The position numbers were made by a program, and so were the translations under genes. A stretch of DNA of 64,000 nt, from positions 124,001 through 188,000 of the IMG/VR virus record IMGVR_UViG_3300042540_001822; one strand, written 5' to 3'. The notes beneath the pieces are model-generated. The model did no database searches. It was not told the DNA's origin and saw nothing but the letters and a program-made list of their open reading frames with translations. This document shows, in pieces, positions 3,712 through 63,914 of the stretch. Every line of letters starts with the position of its first letter. Position 1 is the first letter of the stretch.

Positions 3712-4156
3712 ACCTTTCTATTTTAGTTCCGTTGTATGTTATTGTGATTAGTTTGGTTGGGATATTATGTTCATCACATAATTTGTTACAATAATCAAAC
3801 TCGGTCATATTAGGAGTTAAACCCGCCATCAACCATCTTTCCATCATGTCCAATTCTCTTTCCTCAATCTTTAATCCACCACCCACTTTAAAAAATGAAC
3901 GATTTGTAAGTTGAGTAAATCTTTGTTTACCATCTTTATCTGAAAATTTCACCATATACACTTTGTTTTCATCACGTTCATTTTCAGTTGATGGTACAAC
4001 ATATCTTATTTCACCAATTTCACCTTTGTCAATAGAATATCCATATTCACCATCATCTTCATTCTTTTCAATATCATATTTTAGTTCTACCAAATCACCT
4101 TTTAAGTAGTTCTCATACGCCTCATCAATAATTTGATTCATTTTTTCGTTATTCAT
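3704..4156 (-). CDS. MNNEK-family paralogue 3, chimeric (core replaced by unrelated ~75 aa)
   Basis: Keeps MNNEK N-terminus and LKIEEREL...IERYE tail; lacks FINKCKTD. Confidence 0.85.
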   Translation of the reverse strand: MNNEKMNQIIDEAYENYLKGDLVELKYDIEKNEDDGEYGYSIDKGEIGEIRYVVPSTENERDENKVYMVKFSDKDGKQRFTQLTNRSFFKVGGGLKIEERELDMMERWLMAGLTPNMTEFDYCNKLCDEHNIPTKLITITYNGTKIERYE

Positions 4157-7690: not shown

Positions 7691-7993
7691 TTATTTTTCA
7701 AATTTTTTTAATTCATCGTATAAATCTTGATTTAACTCTTTGAGTTTATTTCCCAGTTCTAAAAGAGTGTGTTCGCTCCAATATCCTTTTCCATCTTCGG
7801 GTTCAAAATAGTAAAATCCATCAACGTCAGGAACAAAATAACCTATCAATTTTCCACCATGTTTCTTGGTGGTGATTTTAAAACTATTGTTTGATAGTTC
7901 GTAGTTTAACATTGAGTTTGTAGCTTTGTAAAGTACATGTCCATTAGGATAACTGGAGTAAAATTCTATCTTCTTTTTTAAAACATTCCCCAT
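7691..7993 (-). CDS. Hypothetical protein (start uncertain)
   Basis: ORF track. Confidence 0.65.
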   Translation of the reverse strand: MGNVLKKKIEFYSSYPNGHVLYKATNSMLNYELSNNSFKITTKKHGGKLIGYFVPDVDGFYYFEPEDGKGYWSEHTLLELGNKLKELNQDLYDELKKFEK

Positions 7994-15622: not shown

Positions 15623-16014
15623 ACTTTTACAAGTTTAAATTTTTCACCACCAATTACAATTTCTTTGTTTTCACAGGATTTGGGTCGGTAGTCTACGATT
15701 GCACCATCTGAATCCTCGTGGTAGATTATATTACCTTTAGAATCGTATTCCCACTTTCTCCAATCTCCCTTTGAATTCTCCCAGTAGATTAATTTACCTT
15801 GAGAATCGTATTCACACTTTACCCAAAATCCATCTGAATTCTCATAGTAGATTAGATTGCCTTGAGAATCCATTTCATACTTTCTCCAAGTCCCATGTGA
15901 ATCCTCAAAGTAGATTAGGTTGTCATTCTTGTCTCGGATTATCAAGTCACCATTGGTCTTGAAATCCCATTTGATTTGTCGTGCTATTGTTTCCATAATT
16001 TTTTTAATCTTCAA
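15619..16014 (-). CDS. Beta-repeat family member, 3 units (start possibly METIARQ)
   Basis: Same family motifs. Confidence 0.9.
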   Translation of the reverse strand: MKIKKIMETIARQIKWDFKTNGDLIIRDKNDNLIYFEDSHGTWRKYEMDSQGNLIYYENSDGFWVKCEYDSQGKLIYWENSKGDWRKWEYDSKGNIIYHEDSDGAIVDYRPKSCENKEIVIGGEKFKLVKV

Positions 16015-16540
16015 ACAGATTTTCTAAATATCGACACATTTCCCCGAGTTGATGAGCTTGTCCTTCAACAAATCCAAGACTAGTTAAGAAATGGTCATTT
16101 TCTTTTTTATACATGTCAAACATACGGCTACCAGTCATTTTAGAGTATTGAACATTAGCTATTCTATCACAAAGTTTAACAAACACAGCTTCTTTGAAGT
16201 TACGAATTCCCTCGTAGTATTTGTCATTTGCACGTTCCTTACGGTTCTTACCCTTTTCATTGGTACATGCATATATGATATCCGCTGTAAATAGTCCAAG
16301 ATTTTCCTTTACATCATTATAAGAAACTCTTGTGTCTTCGATTAAATCGTGACCGTATGCGGCTAGTAGAACCATATCTCTCCATGCTGTTTCTCCATCA
16401 TTTAAATTGGGGATTAATTCTATGAACTTCTCTGCCACCTTAGCAACCATTCGCAGATGGAACTCATAAGGCAAATATGCGTCGTACATATGGTTTGTAG
16501 ATTCGTGTTGCTTAAGAATCCATTTGATTTTTTCATTCAT
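16004..16540 (-). CDS. HD-domain hydrolase, RelA/SpoT hydrolase-like (SAH/Mesh1-type)
   Basis: PYEFHLRMV, AAYGHDLIEDT, VKLCDRIANV. Confidence 0.85.
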   Translation of the reverse strand: MNEKIKWILKQHESTNHMYDAYLPYEFHLRMVAKVAEKFIELIPNLNDGETAWRDMVLLAAYGHDLIEDTRVSYNDVKENLGLFTADIIYACTNEKGKNRKERANDKYYEGIRNFKEAVFVKLCDRIANVQYSKMTGSRMFDMYKKENDHFLTSLGFVEGQAHQLGEMCRYLENLFED

Positions 16541-16593: not shown

Positions 16594-18036
16594 TTAACCC
16601 TCTGATTTTTTGCTACTAGCCAAACCGTTCAACATTGATAAAATGTTTTTACCCTCCTCAGTTTGTTTTAGTCCTTCGAGTAAACCGTTAATTTGTGAAG
16701 CTCCTTTGGACGTGAAAAGGTCTGAAAGCTTTCCAATGCCGGATTGTACGTCTCCACTGTTAATGAGAAGCTTGAGATCAGCTGCGGATAAGGCTTTTGC
16801 CATAGATTCGTACTGTGCAACCCCGACCACTTGGCTCACCTCCACCTCTTTTACCCGAATCAAGTACTCTTGATAAGGTTTGTTTTCCCCGATCTCTTTG
16901 GCCAAAGTGGTCTGTGCAGAAACGCTGGCCAATTCCATCGCCTTTCTTGATTCAGCCTCTGATATACCTTTGGCCTTAATAACATCTGCCTCTGCAGAAC
17001 CAACAGTTTTGGTAGCCTCTGCCTCTTTACGTTTTGCTTCCAGTGCAGCTGATGCTTCTGTTTCAATACGGTATTTTTCGGCCATAGCACGAATTTCTGT
17101 CTTCTGTTTTTCTTGTTCTGCAGTGATGATCTCACGTTCTCTGTCGATCTCGGCTTGCTTGACTTGATTTACCTTTATAACTTCCATCTCTTGCTCGGCA
17201 GTCATTCTTTGTGATTTTGCGATCTCCGAGATAGATTCTTGTTCTGCAATTCCTGTGCGTTTCTTTGACTCTGCTTTGGCTATTCCGATGGCCTGTTGAG
17301 ATTGAGCCTGTGCCTCCCCTGCGATCTTTTCTGTTTCTGCAGTGGTGACGTCAATTTCTTTTCTGGCCTCTAGCTCTGCTTGTTTTGCCATCTTGTTGTT
17401 TTTCGCAACTTCAGTTCTTGATTCCATGTCTATGGCTGACATTCTTTTTGCCATGATTTGGTGGATGACCTGGGATCCGTCTGCGTCTCTTACGTCCATC
17501 AATTCAATGCTTTTGATAGCTTCTACCCCCCAGTTTTGCAAATCATTGTTGACCGCCTCTGTGAACTGCTTACCGAAAATGGATCTTTCCTCCATGATTT
17601 CTTCCAATTTTGATTTGGCCAAAATCGAACGGACTGCTCCTTGAACTACATTTTCTAACTGTCCTTTAAGTTCTTCAAATGATTCAACCTTTTGTGCTGC
17701 AACGTTTGTGTCAGATATATGAAAGAAAGCCTTTACGTCAACCACGAAAGGAACACGATCTTTATCATAGGCCTCATATCGTTTTAAATCGATGTCGAAG
17801 TTGCTAACTGGCAAAACACGTTTTGATACACCGAAGAAAGGAAGCCAACTTGGCCATTCATAGTATACGTTGGATTGTTTATTGGTTCCATATGAGACCG
17901 TCTGTTTTCCACGTTGAACAATGTGTACCACGTTGGTCGGCACGATTCGGCGAAGTGAAACAACGTAAATCAGAATGGAAATCCCGATGATGGTTGGTAA
18001 CGATAGAGCTACCATGGAGAGAATTGATAGAAACAT
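16594..18036 (-). CDS. SPFH/band-7 (flotillin-like) membrane protein
   Basis: N-terminal TM; VPTNVVHIV; DKDRVPFVVDVKAFFHI; GAVRSILA; long AE-rich coiled coil. Confidence 0.9.
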   Translation of the reverse strand: MFLSILSMVALSLPTIIGISILIYVVSLRRIVPTNVVHIVQRGKQTVSYGTNKQSNVYYEWPSWLPFFGVSKRVLPVSNFDIDLKRYEAYDKDRVPFVVDVKAFFHISDTNVAAQKVESFEELKGQLENVVQGAVRSILAKSKLEEIMEERSIFGKQFTEAVNNDLQNWGVEAIKSIELMDVRDADGSQVIHQIMAKRMSAIDMESRTEVAKNNKMAKQAELEARKEIDVTTAETEKIAGEAQAQSQQAIGIAKAESKKRTGIAEQESISEIAKSQRMTAEQEMEVIKVNQVKQAEIDREREIITAEQEKQKTEIRAMAEKYRIETEASAALEAKRKEAEATKTVGSAEADVIKAKGISEAESRKAMELASVSAQTTLAKEIGENKPYQEYLIRVKEVEVSQVVGVAQYESMAKALSAADLKLLINSGDVQSGIGKLSDLFTSKGASQINGLLEGLKQTEEGKNILSMLNGLASSKKSEG

Positions 18037-18091
18037 TTTTTTTGGGTTTAAATTGGTTTATGAAATTGGTTTTTGGATTTTAAAATTTAAA

Positions 18092-18739
18092 TTAAGAAAG
18101 AGAATTTGGAAGGTATAACAGAGTTGGATTCTTCTTTTGAATGTCGATATCTGGATACTTTTTTTTAAATTCCATCACATCAAACTTTTTTGTTATTAAA
18201 TGATGGCCGTTTTTCGTTGGAATAATTGCTTCTATCTTCGGACCCACTTTATGACCGATAGGAAATCCAGCTTCATCAAAGTCAACTTTGGTAATGGGTT
18301 GACAGGAATACTCCAGATGTGCCATCATAAGGGGGGATGGTGTTTGTGATCCATCTACATCCACAATCCATCTTTTCTCATGAGTTTGCATTTGACCAAC
18401 AACAGAATCAAAAAGATTTTTTTGGTTTGGTTGACCATTTCGAATTCTTTCAGCCAAGGAAACCATCATGTTTAAAGAAACATCTTTGTGATTTTGTTTC
18501 TGAACATGAATATAAGCTCTTGCTTTGAACATCTCGCACAATTGTTTTATCTCTTCATATCTTTGGTCGAGATGGTCAACACTTTCTATACAGTAGGTCT
18601 TGATTGTTCTGACCGACTGGTGGTTGTCTTTTTCACCCTCTGGTTGGTCTTTCTTCCTTTTGAAAACATACAACATGTAGAAATCTCCAGATTTCTCAAA
18701 ATTAAGAAGAGGTTTGATTAGAGGAAGATTGTCTATCAT
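18092..18739 (-). CDS. Prim-pol / archaeo-eukaryotic primase-like protein (start moved to MIDNLP)
   Basis: WIVDVD (hhhDhD) and IPTKNGHHLI (sxH) match AEP motifs I and II; canonical promoter just upstream of 18739. Confidence 0.6.
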   Translation of the reverse strand: MIDNLPLIKPLLNFEKSGDFYMLYVFKRKKDQPEGEKDNHQSVRTIKTYCIESVDHLDQRYEEIKQLCEMFKARAYIHVQKQNHKDVSLNMMVSLAERIRNGQPNQKNLFDSVVGQMQTHEKRWIVDVDGSQTPSPLMMAHLEYSCQPITKVDFDEAGFPIGHKVGPKIEAIIPTKNGHHLITKKFDVMEFKKKYPDIDIQKKNPTLLYLPNSLS

Positions 18740-18756
18740 TTGCTGTAAGTTGTAGC

Positions 18757-18789
18757 AAATATACGAAAAAGGATTCGATAAAAAACAAA
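18757..18789 (-). promoter_or_regulatory. Bacteroidota-type housekeeping sigma promoter (-33 TTTG / -7 TAnnTTTG)
   Basis: Minus strand TTTG (18789-18786), 21-nt spacer, TATATTTG (18764-18757). Confidence 0.6.
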
Positions 18790-18817
18790 AACCCAAATTT
18801 TTTTTGGGTTTTTTGTT
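18783..18817 (-). terminator. Hairpin, probable intrinsic terminator downstream of the tRNA-like RNA
   Basis: aaaaacccaaa-ttttt-tttgggttttt inverted repeat with A/T tails. Confidence 0.65.
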
Positions 18818-18824
18818 ATCTTTG

Positions 18825-18946
18825 CCAGAAGGGCGGGGTTCGAACCCGCGGCTCGCCATTACCTCGACCTTAGCGTGCATTCGATCTCGACTTTGCTTGC
18901 GCTTTCAGTGGGTTTCCTTGTAGCACGTTGTTACCCACACCTCCTG
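18825..18946 (-). ncRNA. 122-nt tRNA-like non-coding RNA without a canonical anticodon arm
   Basis: 7-bp acceptor stem CAGGAGG/CCTTCTG; T-arm GCGGG-TTCGAAC-CCCGC; TGGGT/ACCCA stem at D-arm position; GC-rich intergenic island; no CCA. Confidence 0.7.
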
Positions 18947-18950
18947 TTTT

Positions 18951-19178
18951 TTAGTCGTCGTTTCTTTCTCTGATTGAACCTGATGTTGAATCCGGAGGGA
19001 TTGCACCCCAAATTTTTGCAAAATTTTTGTCTTCTATTACACGGGCAATGAAGTCAGATTTTGAAAGCGGATCATTGGTTGTCATCATCCAGGCGTTGTA
19101 ATATTTCTGGTAAACAAGATCAATGTTAGATTTTTCTTCTCCGAAAGAAATTTGTTGTTTTTGTGAATTTGAAATCAT
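18951..19178 (-). CDS. Small protein with an MNNEK-like core
   Basis: VYQKYY...LSKSDFIARVIEDKNFAKIWG aligns with VYERYW...LTKQDFINKCKTDSEFSERWG. Confidence 0.7.
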   Translation of the reverse strand: MISNSQKQQISFGEEKSNIDLVYQKYYNAWMMTTNDPLSKSDFIARVIEDKNFAKIWGAIPPDSTSGSIRERNDD

Positions 19179-19191
19179 AAGAATTTTTTAT

Positions 19192-19929
19192 TTAAGAAAT
19201 TTCTCCTACAGATAGTTTTCCTTTAACATCAATAAGAAATTTACCAATTTCTAAAGCATCTGCCAAATAATATTTTCCACCCATATACTTTCTCATGTGA
19301 CCAAGATTTAAATCCTTAACTTGGGTGTGACCCACAATTTGAATAAAATTCTTTTTGATCCAATAATTTGAATCTGACCTCCTCTTTTTATTCGAAGCTA
19401 GTAGAGCGGGTATACGAATCCAAACAGGAGATTGTGTTACATCATTACCGTAAGAATTCCAACCAGAGAAACAAAAAGCTTTAGGTCGGAATACGAACAT
19501 TTCGTTTATCTTTTCAACCAGATTCCAACAATCCCAGCCATTTATTCCAAATGTATTTTCCATCCAAATGTGGCTGACCCCTGCGTGTGTACAAAGATAT
19601 CTATCGAAAGAGAATGACATTTGGAATTGAGGTAAGTTTTCGGACAGAACTGTGGAAATATCGAATTGTAAACCCGGTTGAAACCCTGAGTATGTTTCAC
19701 CAACGTGCATATAGTGAAGGTCGTGATTACCTACGAGTAAAACTACTTCCTTGTCACTTGACTTTTTAAATTCAACTATTTCCTTGAAGTTGTGTAATTG
19801 GTCTATGCCAGGAATATCAAAAGAATCAAAGTAATCCCCTAAGAATACAATTCTATCTGGATCCTCCTGCTGAATAATTTTTTTCCAGATGGATCTTCCG
19901 TGAATATCACCTATAAAAACTGTTTTCAT
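19192..19929 (-). CDS. Calcineurin-like metallophosphoesterase
   Basis: GDIHG, GDYFD, GNHD, THAG, GHT. Confidence 0.92.
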   Translation of the reverse strand: MKTVFIGDIHGRSIWKKIIQQEDPDRIVFLGDYFDSFDIPGIDQLHNFKEIVEFKKSSDKEVVLLVGNHDLHYMHVGETYSGFQPGLQFDISTVLSENLPQFQMSFSFDRYLCTHAGVSHIWMENTFGINGWDCWNLVEKINEMFVFRPKAFCFSGWNSYGNDVTQSPVWIRIPALLASNKKRRSDSNYWIKKNFIQIVGHTQVKDLNLGHMRKYMGGKYYLADALEIGKFLIDVKGKLSVGEIS

Positions 19930-19970: not shown

Positions 19971-20429
19971 TTATGATTCTATTAGTTGTGCAACGATGTT
20001 CTTAACAGTTCCAATATCTGCTCTTCCTTGGAATCTTTTATTGAACTCACCGATAGTTTTTCCTTGAAGAGCTTGCGGATTTTTGATTGTATCGCTGAAT
20101 CCTTTCATGATCTCGATAAGAGAATCTGCGATTTCTTGGTCTGACATTTGAGCAGGCATGTACCTTCTTAAGACACACGCTTCATCACATTCTTTGCGGG
20201 CAAGTTCATCTCGTCCAGCATCCTCAAAGATCTTTTGAGATTCTTCTCTCTGCTTGATGGCTTTCACCAAAACTTTAACGACTTCTTCATCTTTTAAGTT
20301 TTGCGAAAACCCCGCTTTCTCGGCCTCGGTGATTTTTGCTTTTAAGCTGCTTAAAGCAGACTTCGCATTTTCATCTTTGGCTTTCATAGCCACCACGAAA
20401 TCTTTTTGAATTTGTTCTTTGAGTGTCAT
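19971..20429 (-). CDS. GatB/YqeY-domain protein
   Basis: MTLKEQIQKDFVVAMKAKD...IKQREES...GRDELA.KE...YMP.QMS. Confidence 0.9.
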   Translation of the reverse strand: MTLKEQIQKDFVVAMKAKDENAKSALSSLKAKITEAEKAGFSQNLKDEEVVKVLVKAIKQREESQKIFEDAGRDELARKECDEACVLRRYMPAQMSDQEIADSLIEIMKGFSDTIKNPQALQGKTIGEFNKRFQGRADIGTVKNIVAQLIES

Positions 20430-20430
20430 A

Positions 20431-21531
20431 CTATTTTTCGTTTTTAAGAAGGAACTTGTTGCTAATTGCCTTGAAAGAAATGGTAGTGTCCATACTACGA
20501 ATGACCACTCCTTCCCGTTCAGTATTGGGATTTAGAACTGATTTTCCTTCTGCTTGTTGTAGAAGTTCTTCGATGGTGTCTGGTAGAAGAAACTCAATCC
20601 CGAGAATTGGCACGGTTTCGAATCCCAATAACTTCATTATGTTGATAAAATCTCGAAGGTTTAGTCTTTCCTGCTTATCAATGTCAAAAGCATTGTAGAA
20701 ACGAACGGTATGACCTTTGAGCTTGTAAGGATTCTTTTGAATTCCTTCTCCGATCAATTCTCCTTGGATGCAAATGTTAAGACCGGTTGCTAGTAACTTT
20801 TTCTTAATGTCCATTTCACGAGCTACTTTCCAGAAAGTGTTTTCCTGCTTCGGTCTTTCCAAGCCATCTTCACACATTACAGTGCCAGGTACAAAATCTC
20901 CGGGGTCAGCAAGTTCCAGGTTGCGAGAGCAGACCCCAAATTCACCGTCCTTGATGTAGAATGTAGCAGAACTCCCATCCAACTTTTCAGTTGCATAGAA
21001 CTGGTGTTTGCTGGAGAACTTCCATTCCTCGTATTCCTTGGTTAGATTCTGCACCCTCTCTTCATCGGTCTTACGGATAAAAGATGGGAAGTAGCCTTTG
21101 ACCTTGCCGGCCAGCTCGGCAGGAACTGGCGGCTCGTACTTGACAATGTTCAACATTTCTGTAACATCTAGTCCTTCGAACCAGCCCATATCCAGGTTAG
21201 GAGTGCTACGTTTGTAGATCGCATAGGAATCTGCCAATGGTAGGATGAGACCTTGTGATACTTGCCCGCGAAGTTTGATCGTCTTCAATCGAAATCCTTC
21301 AGATCCGTCAGACATTTTTTTATACGAGCTCTTCCGAAGAAACTCAAACTCTGGCTCAATTGGCAAGTAAGAGTCGATCTCGCAATAGACTACAAGATCT
21401 CCCTCTTTGTGGCCTACGTTTTTGCCAACCACCACTTGCCAGGAATTGATGATTGCCAGTTCAATGGAGTCTGCTCCTTCGATTGGTCGAATCTCACGGA
21501 TTCTTTGTATGCTTGCTAATTTTCTTTCCAT
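20431..21531 (-). CDS. ATP-dependent RNA ligase (DRB0094/Rnl5-like) with N-terminal OB-like domain
   Basis: RKLASIQRI...ADSIE; TEKLDGSS (motif I), QGELIG, FYNAFD, REGVV, FKAISNKFL. Confidence 0.92.
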   Translation of the reverse strand: MERKLASIQRIREIRPIEGADSIELAIINSWQVVVGKNVGHKEGDLVVYCEIDSYLPIEPEFEFLRKSSYKKMSDGSEGFRLKTIKLRGQVSQGLILPLADSYAIYKRSTPNLDMGWFEGLDVTEMLNIVKYEPPVPAELAGKVKGYFPSFIRKTDEERVQNLTKEYEEWKFSSKHQFYATEKLDGSSATFYIKDGEFGVCSRNLELADPGDFVPGTVMCEDGLERPKQENTFWKVAREMDIKKKLLATGLNICIQGELIGEGIQKNPYKLKGHTVRFYNAFDIDKQERLNLRDFINIMKLLGFETVPILGIEFLLPDTIEELLQQAEGKSVLNPNTEREGVVIRSMDTTISFKAISNKFLLKNEK

Positions 21532-34307: not shown

Positions 34308-35369
34308 TTATTTCGGGAGAATTGAATTTATAACACCAGAAAGATAATTGGTGATTTTATAAGGATCTGCATTTGAACCTGGCCTCCTGTCTTCTAGATA
34401 TCCTTTCCATGTTTGAGAGGTAGACAATGGAATTCTAATAGAAGCACCTCTGTCGCTAACTCCCCAGCTGAATTTATCAATGCTTTGGGTCTCATGCTTG
34501 CCTGTCAATCTCATTCGATTGTCAGAGCCGTAAAGAGAAATGGCGGTTTCGTGAGTTTTACCCAATTCCTCACAAATTTGTTCGAAGTATTCTTTGCCTC
34601 CAGATTCTCTCATTTCGAAGGTTGAGAAATTGGTGTGCATGCCAGAGCCATTCCAGTCCTCATGCTCGCCCATGGGCTTTGGATGAAAATCAACTTTTAT
34701 TTTATATGACTCTGCAATTCGAACCAGAAGAAATCTTGAAATCCATAGGTCGTCTGCCGCTGCCTTTTCTCCTTGACCAAAAATTTGGTATTCCCATTGG
34801 CCTAACATTACTTCTGCATTAGTTCCAGTGATGTTGATTCCACAAGACAAACAAGCTTCTAGATGTTGTTCCGAAATTTCTCTTCCTGCAGAATATGGGT
34901 GTCCAATTGAACAATAATATTTACCTTGTTCTTCCGGTACACGGAAATTTTCGAATCCTACAGGAAGAGTTTTGTCTTTATTAAACCATCGAAGAACATA
35001 TTCTTGTTCGAAGCCGAACCAAGTGTTGAAATCCTCATCGTTTATTTTAGCTCTAAAATTCGAGGTGTGTGGGGAATAATCTGAATTTAAAACTTCACAT
35101 AACACAATGAATGAAAATCCACCTTTGAGAGGGTCCGCATACATTTTCACGGGTTTTAAAATACAATCTGAAAGTTTTCCATCCGCTTGTCTAGTAGAAC
35201 TACCGTCAAAATTCCATTCTGGTATTTTCGAAAAGTGATTTCTTGCCCAGTGCATCGGAGAAAATGAACTTTCCCCTTCAAAGGGAACATCCAACACTTT
35301 AATTTTCGATCTTAGATTCGGCTCTGGTTCATATCCATCCAACCAGACATATTCCAATTTTATTTTCAT
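34308..35369 (-). CDS. glnA: Glutamine synthetase, type II (GlnII-like)
   Basis: LEYVWLDG, WNFDGSST, GFEQEY, AEVMLGQWEYQ, DWNGSGMHTNFS, RLTGKHET, RGASIRIP, YLEDRRP. Confidence 0.95.
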   Translation of the reverse strand: MKIKLEYVWLDGYEPEPNLRSKIKVLDVPFEGESSFSPMHWARNHFSKIPEWNFDGSSTRQADGKLSDCILKPVKMYADPLKGGFSFIVLCEVLNSDYSPHTSNFRAKINDEDFNTWFGFEQEYVLRWFNKDKTLPVGFENFRVPEEQGKYYCSIGHPYSAGREISEQHLEACLSCGINITGTNAEVMLGQWEYQIFGQGEKAAADDLWISRFLLVRIAESYKIKVDFHPKPMGEHEDWNGSGMHTNFSTFEMRESGGKEYFEQICEELGKTHETAISLYGSDNRMRLTGKHETQSIDKFSWGVSDRGASIRIPLSTSQTWKGYLEDRRPGSNADPYKITNYLSGVINSILPK

Positions 35370-50342: not shown

Positions 50343-50364
50343 TTTCAATTATTTAAAATTTTTG

Positions 50365-50449
50365 CGGAGAGGGAGGGATTCGAACCCCCGGATCCTTGCG
50401 GATCGGCTGTTTTCAAGACAGCTCTCGTAAACCACTTGAGTACCTCTCC
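50365..50449 (-). tRNA. tRNA-Ser, anticodon TGA; CCA not encoded
   Basis: Acceptor GGAGAGG/CCTCTCC; anticodon arm GCTGT-CTTGAAA-ACAGC; long variable arm GATCC-GCAA-GGATC; T-loop TTCGAAT. Confidence 0.95.
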
Positions 50450-51875: not shown

Positions 51876-51906
51876 AAAAAAAAAAGTTTGTCCGAAGACA
51901 AACTTT
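51876..51906 (-). terminator. Intrinsic terminator after tmRNA
   Basis: AAAGTTTGTC-TTCG-GACAAACTTT followed by U-tract. Confidence 0.85.
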
Positions 51907-51910
51907 GTTG

Positions 51911-52347
51911 TGGAGCTGGGCGGATTCGAACCGCCGTCCTGTTAGGTAGATCTTGGAAACTCATTCACAGGCTTAGTCTATTTTTATAAACAGACAAATC
52001 TTTACCTCCTAGTTTTTGACTGTGATAGGAGATAATCCACAGCGTCTTCCCTTACAGCGATCTGAAGGGTATTGGGCCGGAGCCCGCAGGGTTACTGAGG
52101 GTCGACGAATTTTGTGGTACTATTAACCCTTTTTCCCACAATTGTGACTTTCTGTTCCTGGGCGTCACCTCCCGGTGTTTAGGCTGCCAAGGCAACTTCA
52201 ACCGACTCCACTGAACCTAGTCCAGCAAGAGCAAAAAATGGATTTTCGCCATTTGAAAAGTACTTAGGATATTTAGGTGCTTCCAAAGCTAGCACCGCCT
52301 GCATCATGTCAAAGAACTTGTTCCTCCAGTCGATTCCTGTCAGCCCC
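51911..52347 (-). ncRNA. ssrA: tmRNA, 437 nt; tag reading frame 52250-52179 = (A)GENPFFALAGLGSVESVEVALAA*
   Basis: 5' GGGGCTGACAGGAATCGAC; acceptor GGGGCTG/CAGCTCC with G3:U; T-arm GGCGG-TTCGAAT-CCGCC; tag ends ALAA-stop. Confidence 0.95.
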
Positions 52348-55308: not shown

Positions 55309-56781
55309 TTAAATTGATTCGAATTTTATACCTCCATGAGGCATTCCTTTTGTTTTAAGTGGTCTGTAACCTTTCATTTCGTCTGTAACTACGAATGCCT
55401 TATGAGGATTAACCATTACCCCCATTCTTTTCATTAAACCTCTATTTGCCAAAAAAGGAGTGCTTTTTTGAATTCTGTCAGTAGGTGCAACCTTAACATC
55501 GGAAATTTTAACTCCATTGAGCATCAAATCCAATGATATAATAGGTCTTTTTTCTTTTTCCCTTCCAATTTCAGTGTTTGTGTAACCTATAATTTCATCT
55601 GCGAAAGTATTTTCACCTATTTTCCAATATAGAACTCCATTTTTTTCCTCCAATTCATCAGCGTGAATCGAAGAGGCTGAAGATCCATTACCAGTGTCAA
55701 ATTTTGCCACCATTTTACCAATTCTGGGAATATCTAAAGTTTCTAAATAGCCAACCTCCATTTTGCTATAGCTCCAATTATTCTTGTCTATAACATAGTC
55801 AATAACATCTCCAACAATAGGTCTTCCAATTGCCTGAGAAATACCTTCTGTTCCAGGAGAAGAATTGACCTCCAAAATGTAGGGTTTACCCGATTCAGCA
55901 TCAATCATGATGTCTACTCCACACCAGTGGCTTCCGACTGCATTAGCGGCTTCACAAGCGAGAGCTGCTGTTTCTTCGTCGATATCATAGGATGAAACCT
56001 GCCCTCCCAAAGAGTAATTAGTTCTAAAGTCTTTTTCAACAGCTTCTCTTTTCATGGAACCGAGAATGGTGTAATTTCCTTTTTTTGAAATAAGTGGATC
56101 GAATCTTTTAACGATTACCTGAATTCTAAGATCAAAATTAGAATTAATCTTTTCTTGTATCAAAATTTCCTTTTCCGGGTCTAGCTTTGCTATGGTCTGA
56201 TAAACCGACTTTAAAGAAGCATAAGAATCAACAATCGAAACTCCAATTCCCTGGGTCCCAGACAGTAATTTCATAACGACAGGAAATTTACCTCCAATCT
56301 GCTCCAAAGCGGAATCTAGATTGTCTTCCCCGTTGACTAATGCGTATCTAGGAACGGGTAAACCCTCACCCTCCAAAATCCGGGAGGTAAGAAATTTGCT
56401 TTCACAAATCTCAATTGATTCTAAAGAGTTAACGCAAAAATATCTAGATGCCTCCAAATCTCTCATGATTTGTTTGGTGTAGGAGTTGGTAATAACTCCT
56501 CTCCGAGGAATAATTGCAGTTTTATCTGGTTTAATTAGAATTTCTTTGCCATCTTTTTTTCCTTCACGAACCATGTGTCCGTTGTAAATTTTTTCCAACG
56601 TTATGTTGTTTATGTCCACCACGTTGCAGACGATTCCCCGATTTTCACACTCGGCCATAAAAGATTTAGAGGTAGGGCTGGGTTTGGCGGTACCGGACAG
56701 GATAAGAATTTCTACCCCATCTGAGGACTCGGATTCATTCAAGAAGGTTGAAAAATTAACAACAGAAGGAGCAAAGGACAT
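55309..56781 (-). CDS. RimK-family ATP-grasp ligase fused to a C-terminal retropepsin-like (RimB/DUF785-type) protease; start moved to MSFAPS
   Basis: SKFLT..IL...GLPVP, FPVVMK...GTQGIGV, IQEKI, DLRI, FRTNYSLGG, GVDIM, LEVNSSPG; then AKFDTGNG...SSIHA. Confidence 0.88.
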   Translation of the reverse strand: MSFAPSVVNFSTFLNESESSDGVEILILSGTAKPSPTSKSFMAECENRGIVCNVVDINNITLEKIYNGHMVREGKKDGKEILIKPDKTAIIPRRGVITNSYTKQIMRDLEASRYFCVNSLESIEICESKFLTSRILEGEGLPVPRYALVNGEDNLDSALEQIGGKFPVVMKLLSGTQGIGVSIVDSYASLKSVYQTIAKLDPEKEILIQEKINSNFDLRIQVIVKRFDPLISKKGNYTILGSMKREAVEKDFRTNYSLGGQVSSYDIDEETAALACEAANAVGSHWCGVDIMIDAESGKPYILEVNSSPGTEGISQAIGRPIVGDVIDYVIDKNNWSYSKMEVGYLETLDIPRIGKMVAKFDTGNGSSASSIHADELEEKNGVLYWKIGENTFADEIIGYTNTEIGREKEKRPIISLDLMLNGVKISDVKVAPTDRIQKSTPFLANRGLMKRMGVMVNPHKAFVVTDEMKGYRPLKTKGMPHGGIKFESI

Positions 56782-56810
56782 GAAAGTGGGAAGAAATTTT
56801 TCCTTATATA

Positions 56811-57440
56811 TCACTTTTTTTCAACAAACTCTGTAAAATAATGTTGATCTGTCTCGAAATTTGTTTTATTTTCTACCGAATAAACATTCATATCAATTTT
56901 GTAACCAGGATTTTTTTCTATCCTCTTAAATGTCCACGCATTATCCATCCAAATTATTCTATTATTTGGATAGATGAAATAATTTCCATTGTCCATCTTG
57001 AAAACGTGTCCACATTTGTGTTCTGGTGTTTCTGAAAAATTGGTATCTAATAAGGATCTATTTTCAAAAGACCAATCAAGAGTAAAAAGGTAAATCCCCT
57101 GTCTTTTTAAACCCGAAATTGAAATTAAATCTGCTCTTAATCCGCTCATTCTTGCCCTCACCTGAACATCGATGTACGAGCTAAAGCAATCCCAATAAAT
57201 ATGCTCGCTTAAAGGCAATAATTCAGCATCCTTTTTCCAACAAAAAGCGTTAATGGGTCTTCTTGTCCAATTGACCCCATTTTCCAAAAAAGCTTCAAAT
57301 AATGGAACTCTTTTTTCAATCGAAGCAACCGAATGAACATCTGCTAAGGTAAAATCACCGTGTCCTTTTTCGTGGTTAAATAAAAATTCATTTCTGATGA
57401 AACAGGTCAGAGTTGGGATGTTGTGATTTAGATAGGGCAT
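56811..57440 (-). CDS. Conserved phage hypothetical protein
   Basis: 209-aa ORF (YLNHNIP...WDCFS...YPNNRIIW). Confidence 0.8.
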   Translation of the reverse strand: MPYLNHNIPTLTCFIRNEFLFNHEKGHGDFTLADVHSVASIEKRVPLFEAFLENGVNWTRRPINAFCWKKDAELLPLSEHIYWDCFSSYIDVQVRARMSGLRADLISISGLKRQGIYLFTLDWSFENRSLLDTNFSETPEHKCGHVFKMDNGNYFIYPNNRIIWMDNAWTFKRIEKNPGYKIDMNVYSVENKTNFETDQHYFTEFVEKK

Positions 57441-62526: not shown

Positions 62527-62880
62527 TTAGATTTCTCCATCTGTATATATCTTTCCTGGACTATTTTTTATTAGATAAACAATTAGGGTATTAATAATGA
62601 CACTTGCCCCGCTAATCCAAAATCCAGAAAAAAGTATTGTTAGAATTTGGTAAAAATACCCATCATATTCCAATAAAAACATGAAAGGATTAACCATCTG
62701 ATTGGCGGAAATCAGCAAACCAAATAAGATTCCCACCCAAAAGCCAGAACACTGCATACAGGTCAATAATTTTCCCAAAGTTGGGTACATTACCTGCAAA
62801 TAAATTCTGAGAGGATCAAATATGGAACCATTGACTAAAATACTGGTGATGGCCCAACCTAAAAAACTAAATTCAATCAT
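62527..62880 (-). CDS. DUF1360-like membrane protein
   Basis: LGKLLTCMQCSGFWVG between TM helices. Confidence 0.65.
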   Translation of the reverse strand: MIEFSFLGWAITSILVNGSIFDPLRIYLQVMYPTLGKLLTCMQCSGFWVGILFGLLISANQMVNPFMFLLEYDGYFYQILTILFSGFWISGASVIINTLIVYLIKNSPGKIYTDGEI

Positions 62881-63914
62881 GACGGAAAGATTTTCTTGTA
62901 AGTAGACAAGAAATCCCTTTGTGTTTCATTTAATTCTTTAGGAATTCTTAATTTTAATCTGATTAATATGTCTCCTCTGAAATCAGAGTTAAATTCAGGA
63001 ATTCCCTTTCCTGCTAACCGGAGAATCTTTCCTGGATCTGATCCAGGAGGTATTGAAATTTTATATTCTCCGTCTGGAATTTCTAAATTTGGAATTTTAA
63101 CCTCTGCACCCATACAGGCATCATAAAAATCAACATCCATATCACAATACAAATTCAGGGAATCACGTTTGTAAAAATGATGTTGAATATCCTCTACAGA
63201 CACAATTAAGTCTCCAGGATCACATGGGGATTTTTCAAAATCTCCACCTCCGTCGATCTTGAAATTTATACCCGTAACTGAACCTTTAGGAACCGTAATG
63301 TCTACCTGTGTTGTCTGTCTTATGGTTCCAGAACCAGAACAAGAATGGCAAGGTGTTTTGGCAGTTTCTCCAAATCCACCACAGGAAAAACACGTTCCAT
63401 CCACAGCCATTTGACCAAACCCTGTATTTACAATTTTTCTATTTACTCCTGTTCCATTACACTGAACACAAAAAACGACCTCAGCATTATGTGCTCCTGT
63501 CCCTTTGCACGGTTCACAAGGAAATCTTTTGAATAGTGTTACCTTTTTCTGTGCTCCCTTTAGTACATCCGCTAGATTAATTTGCAATCTGGCGTTTATA
63601 TTTTTCCCCTTTCGAATTTGTGTTTTATGTTGATGCCAGGAGTTTGCTGAATTGAAATTATTAAAAAAATCTGCAAATGGACTTCCCCAGTTTGCTTGAT
63701 TAGGTCCGCTCCACTTCGGAGAATCATATGCTTTCTTTTTTGAAGGATCCCCTAAAGTTTCGTAGGCTTCGTTTATTTGTTTAAATTTTGCCTCTGCAGA
63801 GGTGTCTCCTGGATTTTTATCTGGATGATATTTTAAGGCCAATCTCCTGTAACTTTTTTTTATTGCATCAGAAGACGCTTCTCTTCCAACTTCTAAAATT
63901 TGATAAAAGTCCAT
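62877..63914 (-). CDS. dnaJ: DnaJ chaperone
   Basis: J-domain with HPD; four CxxCxGxG repeats; C-terminal GDLIV / GDILI. Confidence 0.96.
   Translation of the reverse strand: MDFYQILEVGREASSDAIKKSYRRLALKYHPDKNPGDTSAEAKFKQINEAYETLGDPSKKKAYDSPKWSGPNQANWGSPFADFFNNFNSANSWHQHKTQIRKGKNINARLQINLADVLKGAQKKVTLFKRFPCEPCKGTGAHNAEVVFCVQCNGTGVNRKIVNTGFGQMAVDGTCFSCGGFGETAKTPCHSCSGSGTIRQTTQVDITVPKGSVTGINFKIDGGGDFEKSPCDPGDLIVSVEDIQHHFYKRDSLNLYCDMDVDFYDACMGAEVKIPNLEIPDGEYKISIPPGSDPGKILRLAGKGIPEFNSDFRGDILIRLKLRIPKELNETQRDFLSTYKKIFPS

Follow-up and report, generated by a model that had tools for sequence, protein, structure and literature searches.

The 64,000-nucleotide (nt) stretch of DNA analyzed here (the window) lies in IMGVR_UViG_3300042540_001822, a 219-kb contig of a freshwater jumbo phage whose hosts are probably Bacteroidota. 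On its minus strand, at 18946-18825, the window carries a 122-nt element with the acceptor stem and T-arm of a tRNA, but without an anticodon arm. The element follows the last stop codon of an operon encoding an RNA ligase and precedes the operon terminator. It is present in some relatives and absent from others, and is strongly conserved where present. We tentatively propose, at slightly less than even confidence, that it specifies a selected, single-copy accessory RNA, derived from a tRNA but not used in decoding, which would be matured from the 3' end of the operon transcript and act in trans through its acceptor/T-arm surface.

Anatomy and detection of the tRNA-like element

The element was identified by reading of the sequence and by a descriptor scan; its position n corresponds to window coordinate 18947-n. 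The 5' strand of the acceptor stem (CAGGAGG, 18946-18940) pairs at seven of seven positions, one of them a G·U, with the 3' strand (CCTTCTG, 18832-18826). U8 and G9 separate the 5' strand from a D-like arm of 5 base pairs (bp; TGGGT/ACCCA, 18937-18933 and 18913-18909), which is invariant in all copies. The loop of this arm is 19 nt long (AACAACGTGCTACAAGGAA) and has GG-A within it, A-A after the stem and GGA before the stem. The anticodon-arm position is occupied by an irregular 10-bp hairpin (4+3+3 bp with an AGAT loop, 18903-18872), seen in the sequence and on folding, which reads AGCG-CAA-GCA-AAG-TCG-AGAT-CGA-A-TGC-A-CGCT. A variable-arm-like segment of 22 nt (GGTCGAGGTAATGGCGAGCC, 18871-18850) leads from there to the T-arm, GCGGG TTCGAAC CCCGC (18849-18833), which has a consensus T-loop and the G53-C61 pair and abuts the 3' strand of the acceptor. 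The discriminator G73 is followed by CAA (as part of CAAAG; 18825-18822), and CCA is not encoded. All features of a tRNA mimic that the initial annotation had placed at 18825-18946 are present there on the minus strand.

The acceptor and T-arm have the form expected of a tRNA, namely a 7-bp stem with a discriminator, and a T54-T55-C56-R57-A58 loop closed by G53-C61. An anticodon arm, with its 5-bp stem, 7-nt loop, U33 and anticodon, is absent, its place being taken by the irregular hairpin with a 4-nt loop. Because the anticodon arm is lost, the element cannot decode. It resembles canonical tRNA (RF00005), especially the class II tRNAs of its phage group, in the 7-bp acceptor, U8, the TTCGAAC T-arm, G53-C61, the discriminator and the 3' trailer, but differs in lacking the anticodon arm, in its length of 122 nt, and in falling below the reporting threshold of RF00005. 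Whereas a canonical D-arm has 3-4 bp and a loop of 7-11 nt with G18 G19, that of the element has 5 bp and a 19-nt loop with GG, is invariant, and competes with an alternative pairing. When constrained to a tRNA-like fold, the element takes the shape of a class II-like cloverleaf that includes a hairpin for the variable arm. The tRNA from which it descends was probably of class II (Leu/Ser-like). With its "top half" kept, the acceptor being stacked on the T-arm, the D-like arm could form an elbow.

Chance occurrence was assessed with a descriptor that called for a TTCRANY loop closed by G53-C61 on a T stem of 5 bp, together with a fully paired 7-bp acceptor at a distance of 40-220 nt upstream. 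On both strands of the 64 kb it matched the true tRNA-Ser (50365-50449) and the element only, and on 30 shuffles it gave no match, which confirms the element beyond chance.

Annotation tools, tRNA finders included, make no call, in agreement with its initial description as unannotated. ARAGORN at default settings reported the tRNA-Ser and a transfer-messenger RNA (tmRNA) in the window and nothing else. With introns allowed, and at thresholds of 80% and 60%, it returned only implausible models using other sequence as the acceptor; the absence of an anticodon arm is thus borne out even under relaxed settings. Rfam at the gathering score (29 bits for RF00005) likewise gave only the tRNA-Ser and the tmRNA in the window. 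The initial annotation had proposed an Infernal search with Rfam tRNA and Y-RNA models as a check. At E ≤ 10, the 551 nt around the element yielded 13 weak, terminator-driven chance matches, and none to RF00005, to tmRNA or to a Y-RNA family (YrlA-type models if included in the collection).

Conservation of the element and occupancy of its site

The element is 97.5-99% identical between copies, compared with 83-85% identity in its flanks. The related loci L116 and L117, which carry a 131-amino-acid (aa) form of the gene upstream of the element, were compared against the window. Divergence from it amounts to 15-17% over the 162 nt at the 3' end of the upstream gene, to 15% over the 85 nt comprising spacer, terminator and promoter, and to 17% over the opening 300 nt of the downstream gene. 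Within the element they show 3 differences in 122 positions, against 90 in 547 for the coding and intergenic DNA on either side (p = 8e-6 by Fisher's test and 1e-6 by a binomial test). L119 and L121 each have 2 differences in 122 positions, against 15-18% downstream, and L099 has a single one. The near-invariant block extends from the last codons of the upstream gene to ~7 nt past the discriminator base. In Logan contigs of the runs X18 and X19, which are probably DNA libraries, 11 differences fall in 18771-18824 and one is listed within the part of the element covered by both. Purifying selection on the element appears to be a simpler reading of this pattern than recent exchange of a cassette, because an exchanged cassette should carry the terminator, yet the terminator has diverged.

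The few substitutions are informative about pairing. At 18829, the acceptor pair G4·U69 of the window and L099 is G-C in L116, L117, L119-L121 and the X18/X19 contigs, and at 18835, the T-stem pair 100-112 changes from G-C to G·U in L117; pairing is kept in both cases. Position 18868, where copies have either G or A, belongs to a stretch left unpaired in the tRNA-like model. All five T-arm pairs are kept in six of six variants, and TCGAGGTAATGGCGAG of the variable-arm-like segment is identical in the same number, including the diverged L110. The L110 element is a mosaic: its initial 63 nt, like the gene upstream of it, are nearly identical to the window, and the remainder is ~25% diverged. Its T-arm, GAAGG TTCAAGC CCTTC, has compensated changes at pairs 99-113 (C-G to A-U) and 100-112 (G-C to A-U), and a loop that fits the consensus. 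As these substitutions keep pairing, the T-arm, and more weakly the acceptor, behaves as a real helix. The double-sided T-stem changes comprise two pairs in a single lineage (L110), in addition to the two wobble changes elsewhere; RNAalifold, evaluated on its own, different structure, counts none. The long irregular hairpin, also part of the initial annotation, is present in the sequence at 18903-18872, but did not hold up as a conserved structure: a change at 18900 in L116 breaks pair 47-72, three pairs are broken in L110, and none of the breaks is compensated.

To compare this site among relatives, we followed both the 75-aa and the 131-aa forms of the upstream gene in the protein collection. 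The gap between the stop codon of this gene and the terminator (window 18947-18950; L091-L121) serves as a hot spot for cargo, with at least five alternative contents, and a conserved cassette of terminator and promoter flanks it. The site is empty in L101-L103 and L106, in which the terminator begins 5 nt after the stop codon. The element occupies it in the window (with L107 and L108 identical), in L099, L116, L117 and L119-L121, and, up to the contig ends, in L100 and L118. L091-L098 contain a 68-aa open reading frame (ORF) on the opposite strand instead, and L104, L105 and L004 a 129-aa ORF. In L111-L115, the first 36 nt of the element are followed by two unrelated genes, and a decayed 36-nt stump is found in L089 and L090. 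The mosaic element of L110 represents a further state. Because the site is empty or holds other cargo in close relatives, the element is accessory, and can be lost or overwritten. The RNA ligase operon lies upstream in every state of the hot spot, and is therefore independent of the element. The initial characterization of the element as band-7-associated did not survive this comparison, since the SPFH (band-7) gene adjoins an element-less site in L091, L094 and L111, and no SPFH gene neighbors the element in L117.

At least 17 lake-water or freshwater DNA runs from 2016-2025 contain the surrounding 2 kb, and the element itself was seen in at least six independent metagenome datasets. A pattern scan of IMG/VR did not recover the L110 variant. 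Searches of the window and ~1 Mb of related loci with nhmmer and blastn-short, for which the queries were the whole element, each half of it and a profile of six sequences, returned no paralog. The false N-terminal extension described below, used as query in a region-limited protein search, gave no variant candidates.

Operon context and relation to the tRNA genes of the phage group

The genes around the element are all on the minus strand. The operon consists of an RNA ligase (20431-21531; PF21189 and PF09414; TIGR02306, DRB0094-type, 191.6 bits), YqeY (19971-20429), a metallophosphoesterase (19192-19929) and a 75-aa ORF to which no function was assigned (18951-19178), whose stop codon lies 4 nt before the element. 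The terminator that had been noted after the element is an intrinsic one, with its hairpin at 18813-18787, 11 nt downstream of the element, and a T tract (18778-18813 in all). It is followed by a conserved block, TTTTTCGTATATTTGCTACA, with a Bacteroidota-type -7 box (TATATTTG, 18763-18756), and then by the downstream gene, which encodes a protein of 215 aa (phrog_14949; 18092-18739). No -7 box was found on the strand of the element within 600 nt upstream, so that co-transcription with the operon is the simplest assumption. The element, lying between the last stop codon and the operon terminator without a recognizable promoter, is most likely the 3' end of the operon transcript.

A mechanically called ORF of 262 aa (18092-18880) overlaps the 3' half of the element. 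Homologs of the downstream gene align from the ATG at 18739, and are called as 215 aa where the upstream sequence differs; the ORF is thus over-extended. The promoter block TTTTTCGTATATTTGnTACA, which carries the -7 box, and the ATG at 18739 are common to all relatives. Both observations uphold the earlier inference that the ORF was falsely extended and that the real start is at 18739. The accompanying label of a primase-polymerase (prim-pol) for the 215-aa protein was not confirmed by sequence searches of Pfam, NCBIfam and the PDB. An alignment-based AlphaFold model (mean predicted local distance difference test score, 70.7) had no Foldseek match in the PDB at E ≤ 0.001, and a weak "AEP-like" lead in a protein-atlas search is the sole remaining pointer to that function. 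Homologs in named or cultured phages all belong to phages of Bacteroidota (Cellulophaga, Tenacibaculum, Prevotella Lak and crAss-like), which fits the type of promoter. Further downstream are the SPFH gene (16594-18036) and an HD-domain gene (16004-16540).

The 3' trailers link the element to the tRNA genes of the phage. Written from the discriminator base, they read G-CAAAAA for the tRNA-Ser (50361-50364), A-CAACAA for the tmRNA (51905-51908), G-CAAAGA for the element and A-CAAAAG for the L110 variant. Among 53 distinct tRNAs listed from related loci, N73-C is followed by A/T-rich sequence, except for a few that run into CCA. The element therefore bears the local signature of a gene matured by tRNA 3' processing, the N73-C-AA trailer being common to the tRNAs and the tmRNA of the group. 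The trailers examined include those of tRNAs in L015, L037, L039, L048, L065 and L076, and a full CCA is almost never encoded.

A second link is provided by L110, where the 5' part (1530-1645) of a conserved RNA of ~190 nt comes after the element at the customary distance of ~25 nt. In L122-L127, this RNA lies inside tRNA arrays, ~25 nt after tRNA-Leu(TAA), and contains the Rfam motif freshwater-1 (RF02979); it is located at ~7835-8010 in L122 (freshwater-1 at 7926-7988) and at 8418-8479 in L124. Because the spacing to the array RNA in L110 equals that of a tRNA, the element sits in a tRNA slot. The orphan freshwater-1 motif thereby gains a phage tRNA-array context.

Remodeled tRNAs are a recurrent feature of the group. 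In L039, L048, L037, L004 and L045, the gene for the 215-aa protein is immediately preceded by tRNA arrays or odd tRNAs, and related freshwater jumbo phages have oversized tRNAs of 98-153 nt, whose acceptor and T arms are normal but whose D-loop or anticodon/variable region is enlarged by long insertions. Examples that match RF00005 are found in L045 (1834-1951, 40.8 bits), L004 (476-607, 31.5 bits) and L127 (1049-1146, 41.4 bits), and further oversized tRNAs lie in L015 (1703-1855) and L065 (3338-3453). They resemble the element in belonging to the same phage group, in several cases in the same genome region, and in combining normal acceptor and T arms with large insertions. Unlike the element, those of L045, L004, L015 and L127 reach the gathering score of RF00005 (31-45 bits) and keep a canonical D-arm, and their sequence homology to the element is confined to the T-arm. 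The element has the appearance of an extreme case of this remodeling. Several of the oversized tRNAs begin with AGTCAGG. Another tRNA in L045 (2046-2128) has a 20-nt anticodon loop with AUUUAAU, in which a UUA anticodon is possible, making it a candidate ochre suppressor. Descent of the element from a particular tRNA was also considered. In its 3' part it aligns best with the tRNA-Ser of the window (21 of 25 positions), but this score lies within a continuous distribution, so that the tRNA-Ser is only a weak lead to the source.

The tmRNA offers a partial parallel, since its tRNA-like domain, as in the element, joins an acceptor and a T-arm through non-tRNA sequence, and the tmRNA of the window has the same type of trailer. 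In contrast to tmRNA, the element has G3-C70 rather than G3·U70 (its G4·U69 is G-C in other copies), has no pseudoknots, tag frame or resume codon, is four times shorter, and does not match RF00023. The tmRNA of the window is a separate gene on the minus strand (51908-52347; RF00023, 67.2 bits), for which the ARAGORN tag, VPQNSSTLSNPAGSGPIPFRSL, is atypical.

Several further observations concern the operon and the genome. In sister loci, the metallophosphoesterase (19192-19929 in the window) is swapped for an S-adenosylmethionine-dependent methyltransferase (L100, 728-1369; L101, 3344-3985; L111, 2340-2981), a swap within an RNA ligase/YqeY operon that is reminiscent of the RNA-repair logic of Pnkp/Hen1. 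In L084, an intergenic stretch of ~100 nt after the phosphoesterase gene (3720-3830) resembles a long imperfect hairpin (GCAGATAAGC...GCTTATGTGCTG) and is not tRNA-like. Elsewhere in the window are auxiliary genes unusual for a phage, encoding a glutamine-synthetase-like protein (34308-35369), a RimK-type ATP-grasp ligase (55309-56814) and a full DnaJ (62877-63914).

Proposed function and alternative explanations

We propose the following model for the element as a non-decoding RNA acting in trans. The operon transcript, covering the RNA ligase, YqeY and phosphoesterase genes, would carry the element at its 3' end. Cleavage by RNase P on the 5' side of C1 would free it, and 3' trimming and CCA addition would follow, as for the phage tRNA-Ser and tmRNA that share the N73-C-AA trailer. 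The mature RNA of ~122-125 nt would then act through its acceptor/T-arm surface, as a competitor or decoy for a protein recognizing that surface, for example a host tRNA-directed defense enzyme, or a tRNA-processing or tRNA-modifying factor. Such a role toward a tRNA-binding host factor appears the most likely one, in view of the accessory hot-spot behavior and the RNA-repair neighbors; occupancy of an accessory cargo site would be typical of phage counter-defense genes. There is precedent for tRNA-like modules cut out of longer transcripts by tRNA-processing enzymes, in the mascRNA of MALAT1 and in the small stable RNAs of the T4 tRNA cluster. In these, a tRNA-like fold lies within or at the 3' end of a longer transcript, as proposed for the element, with which they have no sequence relationship.

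Several observations weigh against this proposal. The distribution is very narrow, which limits the claim: among 80 related loci reached via the downstream gene, the element was in the window's own contig alone. Exact and degenerate pattern scans of IMG/VR also returned this contig only, and a pattern scan of JGI metagenomes gave two identical copies only. No match was obtained in pattern scans of 185,579 species genomes, including one with a 22-mer over the T-arm and acceptor, or in GenBank phages by megablast and blastn. (The absence of the 22-mer from these genomes also indicates that the 3' half of the element is not a captured host tRNA end.) Many close relatives are without the element, and L089 and L111 keep merely the 36-nt stump. 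Reads of the metatranscriptome X20 cover 18024-18247 only, and none lies on the element; another metatranscriptome run, X26, contains 0.18 of the element's sampled words. Folding is equivocal. In folding energy the 122 nt do not stand out (z = -1.0), and both the minimum free energy (MFE) optimum and RNAalifold favor a 12-bp terminal helix, CAGGAGG-U-GUGGG/CCCGC-CCUUCUG, over the T-arm and D-stem. This helix extends the acceptor by pairing GUGGG with the 3' strand of the T-stem, CCCGC, in competition with the D-like stem, although forcing the acceptor, D-like stem and T-arm costs just 1.1 kcal/mol relative to the optimum. L110 has lost three acceptor pairs; a 5' strand TATCAGG would be needed to match its 3' strand, CCTGATA. 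The D-like stem is invariant, so that its pairing is not probed by variation, and six distinct, close sequences are too few for significant covariation. The low divergence could also stem from recent exchange of a cassette.

Alternative explanations were weighed against the same data. The element might act in cis, as a processing or punctuation site or a stabilizer at the 3' end of the operon mRNA, with no role in trans. Its position 4 nt after a stop codon and before a terminator, without a promoter of its own, would suit such a site, as would the long terminal helix favored by RNAalifold and MFE folding and the punctuation-like arrangement in L110, where the element precedes the freshwater-1-containing RNA at tRNA-array spacing. 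We consider this unlikely, since relatives with the same operon and terminator lack the element, indicating that the mRNA can do without it; the terminator hairpin already guards the 3' end, and all 122 nt are conserved, including the loops, beyond the needs of a simple processing site. It is similarly unlikely that the element has no function and is the remnant of a deleted array, in the form of a tRNA pseudogene that is decaying or chimeric. The arrays and odd tRNAs upstream of the same downstream gene (L039, L048, L037, L004 and L045), the tie to a tRNA-array RNA in L110, the stumps and chimera in L089, L111 and L110, and the lack of an anticodon arm and of any tRNA-model match would all agree with decay. 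A relic, however, would not be expected to diverge by 2.5% where both flanks, protein-coding DNA included, diverge by 15-17%, or to retain a perfect 7-bp acceptor and a canonical T-arm in five lineages with stem changes there that keep pairing. The conserved object may instead be the DNA itself, as a target for recombination or integration (a tRNA-like attachment site), or as a small cassette that co-infecting phages have traded in the recent past; its low divergence would then be a mark of recent spread and not of RNA function. The hot spot occurs in at least five states, cargo is joined to the element internally (at position 36/37 in L111 and L089, and at ~63 in L110), and the 3' part of the L110 element is a diverged copy followed by foreign DNA, as with integration into tRNA genes. 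We find this explanation very doubtful, because no integrase lies near the element, the element is single-copy with no second in ~1 Mb of related phage DNA, and the adjacent terminator and promoter, which would be expected to travel with a cassette, are 15% diverged.

Other explanations retain an RNA or peptide product. The element might be a chargeable, anticodon-less tRNA of class II type, with G73 and a long variable-arm-like segment, used by the phage outside decoding; it would then be one case of a wider, so far undescribed tendency of Bacteroidota jumbo phages to remodel tRNA bodies, as in L004, L015, L045 and L127. Recognition of the SerRS or LeuRS type may need no anticodon, and the RNA may serve as an aminoacyl donor, as a sponge for EF-Tu, an aminoacyl-tRNA synthetase or the CCA enzyme, or as bait for a host tRNA-targeting nuclease or toxin, to be re-sealed by the products of the adjacent RNA ligase/phosphoesterase operon. 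We regard this version as distinctly unlikely. A coding function, either as a 26-codon readthrough extension of the 75-aa gene or as an ORF of 18-22 codons behind AGGAGG, is highly improbable. The frame past the TAA is open for 26 codons, the L116 change at 18900 is synonymous in it, and L110 has a 23-codon ORF at the same place; on the other side, the stop varies between TAA and TGA among copies and is thus a true stop, the frame spans element positions 1-77 while conservation reaches 122, an indel alters the C-terminal residues in L110, and the geometry of the T-arm and acceptor is left unaccounted for. The initial annotation had also suggested a YrlA-type Y RNA acting as a repair scaffold, which would work with a Ro60 ortholog in RNA repair or decay, and a tRNA-like RNA beside an RNA ligase gene does recall the rsr-yrlBA-rtcBA operon (PMC7790460, PMC4201824). 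Some YrlA RNAs are cut by RNase P and given CCA, and they are encoded near RNA repair genes; in YrlA, the Ro-binding helix is made by the two ends of the molecule, the acceptor-like stem is a closed stem-loop, and a Ro-binding motif, GNCGAAN0-1G, lies near the 5' end (PMC4201824). The element has a circularly different topology, in that its ends form the acceptor stem. The motif is absent from it, CGAA occurring only in mid-molecule (GATCGAATG, with an A two bases before CGAA) and in the T-loop (GTTCGAAC), and no Y-RNA family of Rfam matched at E ≤ 10. The proposed check for a Ro60/TROVE gene was also negative within 4 kb and among the 12 ORFs of at least 330 aa in the window, the search for partner genes covering 64 kb of the 219-kb genome. 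A Y RNA is therefore an extremely improbable identity for the element.

Phage tRNAs are now viewed as tools against host defenses that cleave tRNAs. If our proposal of a trans-acting, non-decoding RNA is true, the element would clearly exemplify a tRNA body retained for a job other than decoding, nearly invariant beside genes that have drifted by 15%, at the end of an RNA-repair operon. Genes of this kind are missed by standard tRNA and Rfam annotation, and gene callers cover them with extended ORFs. As the same phage group has several other remodeled tRNAs, the class may extend beyond a single locus.

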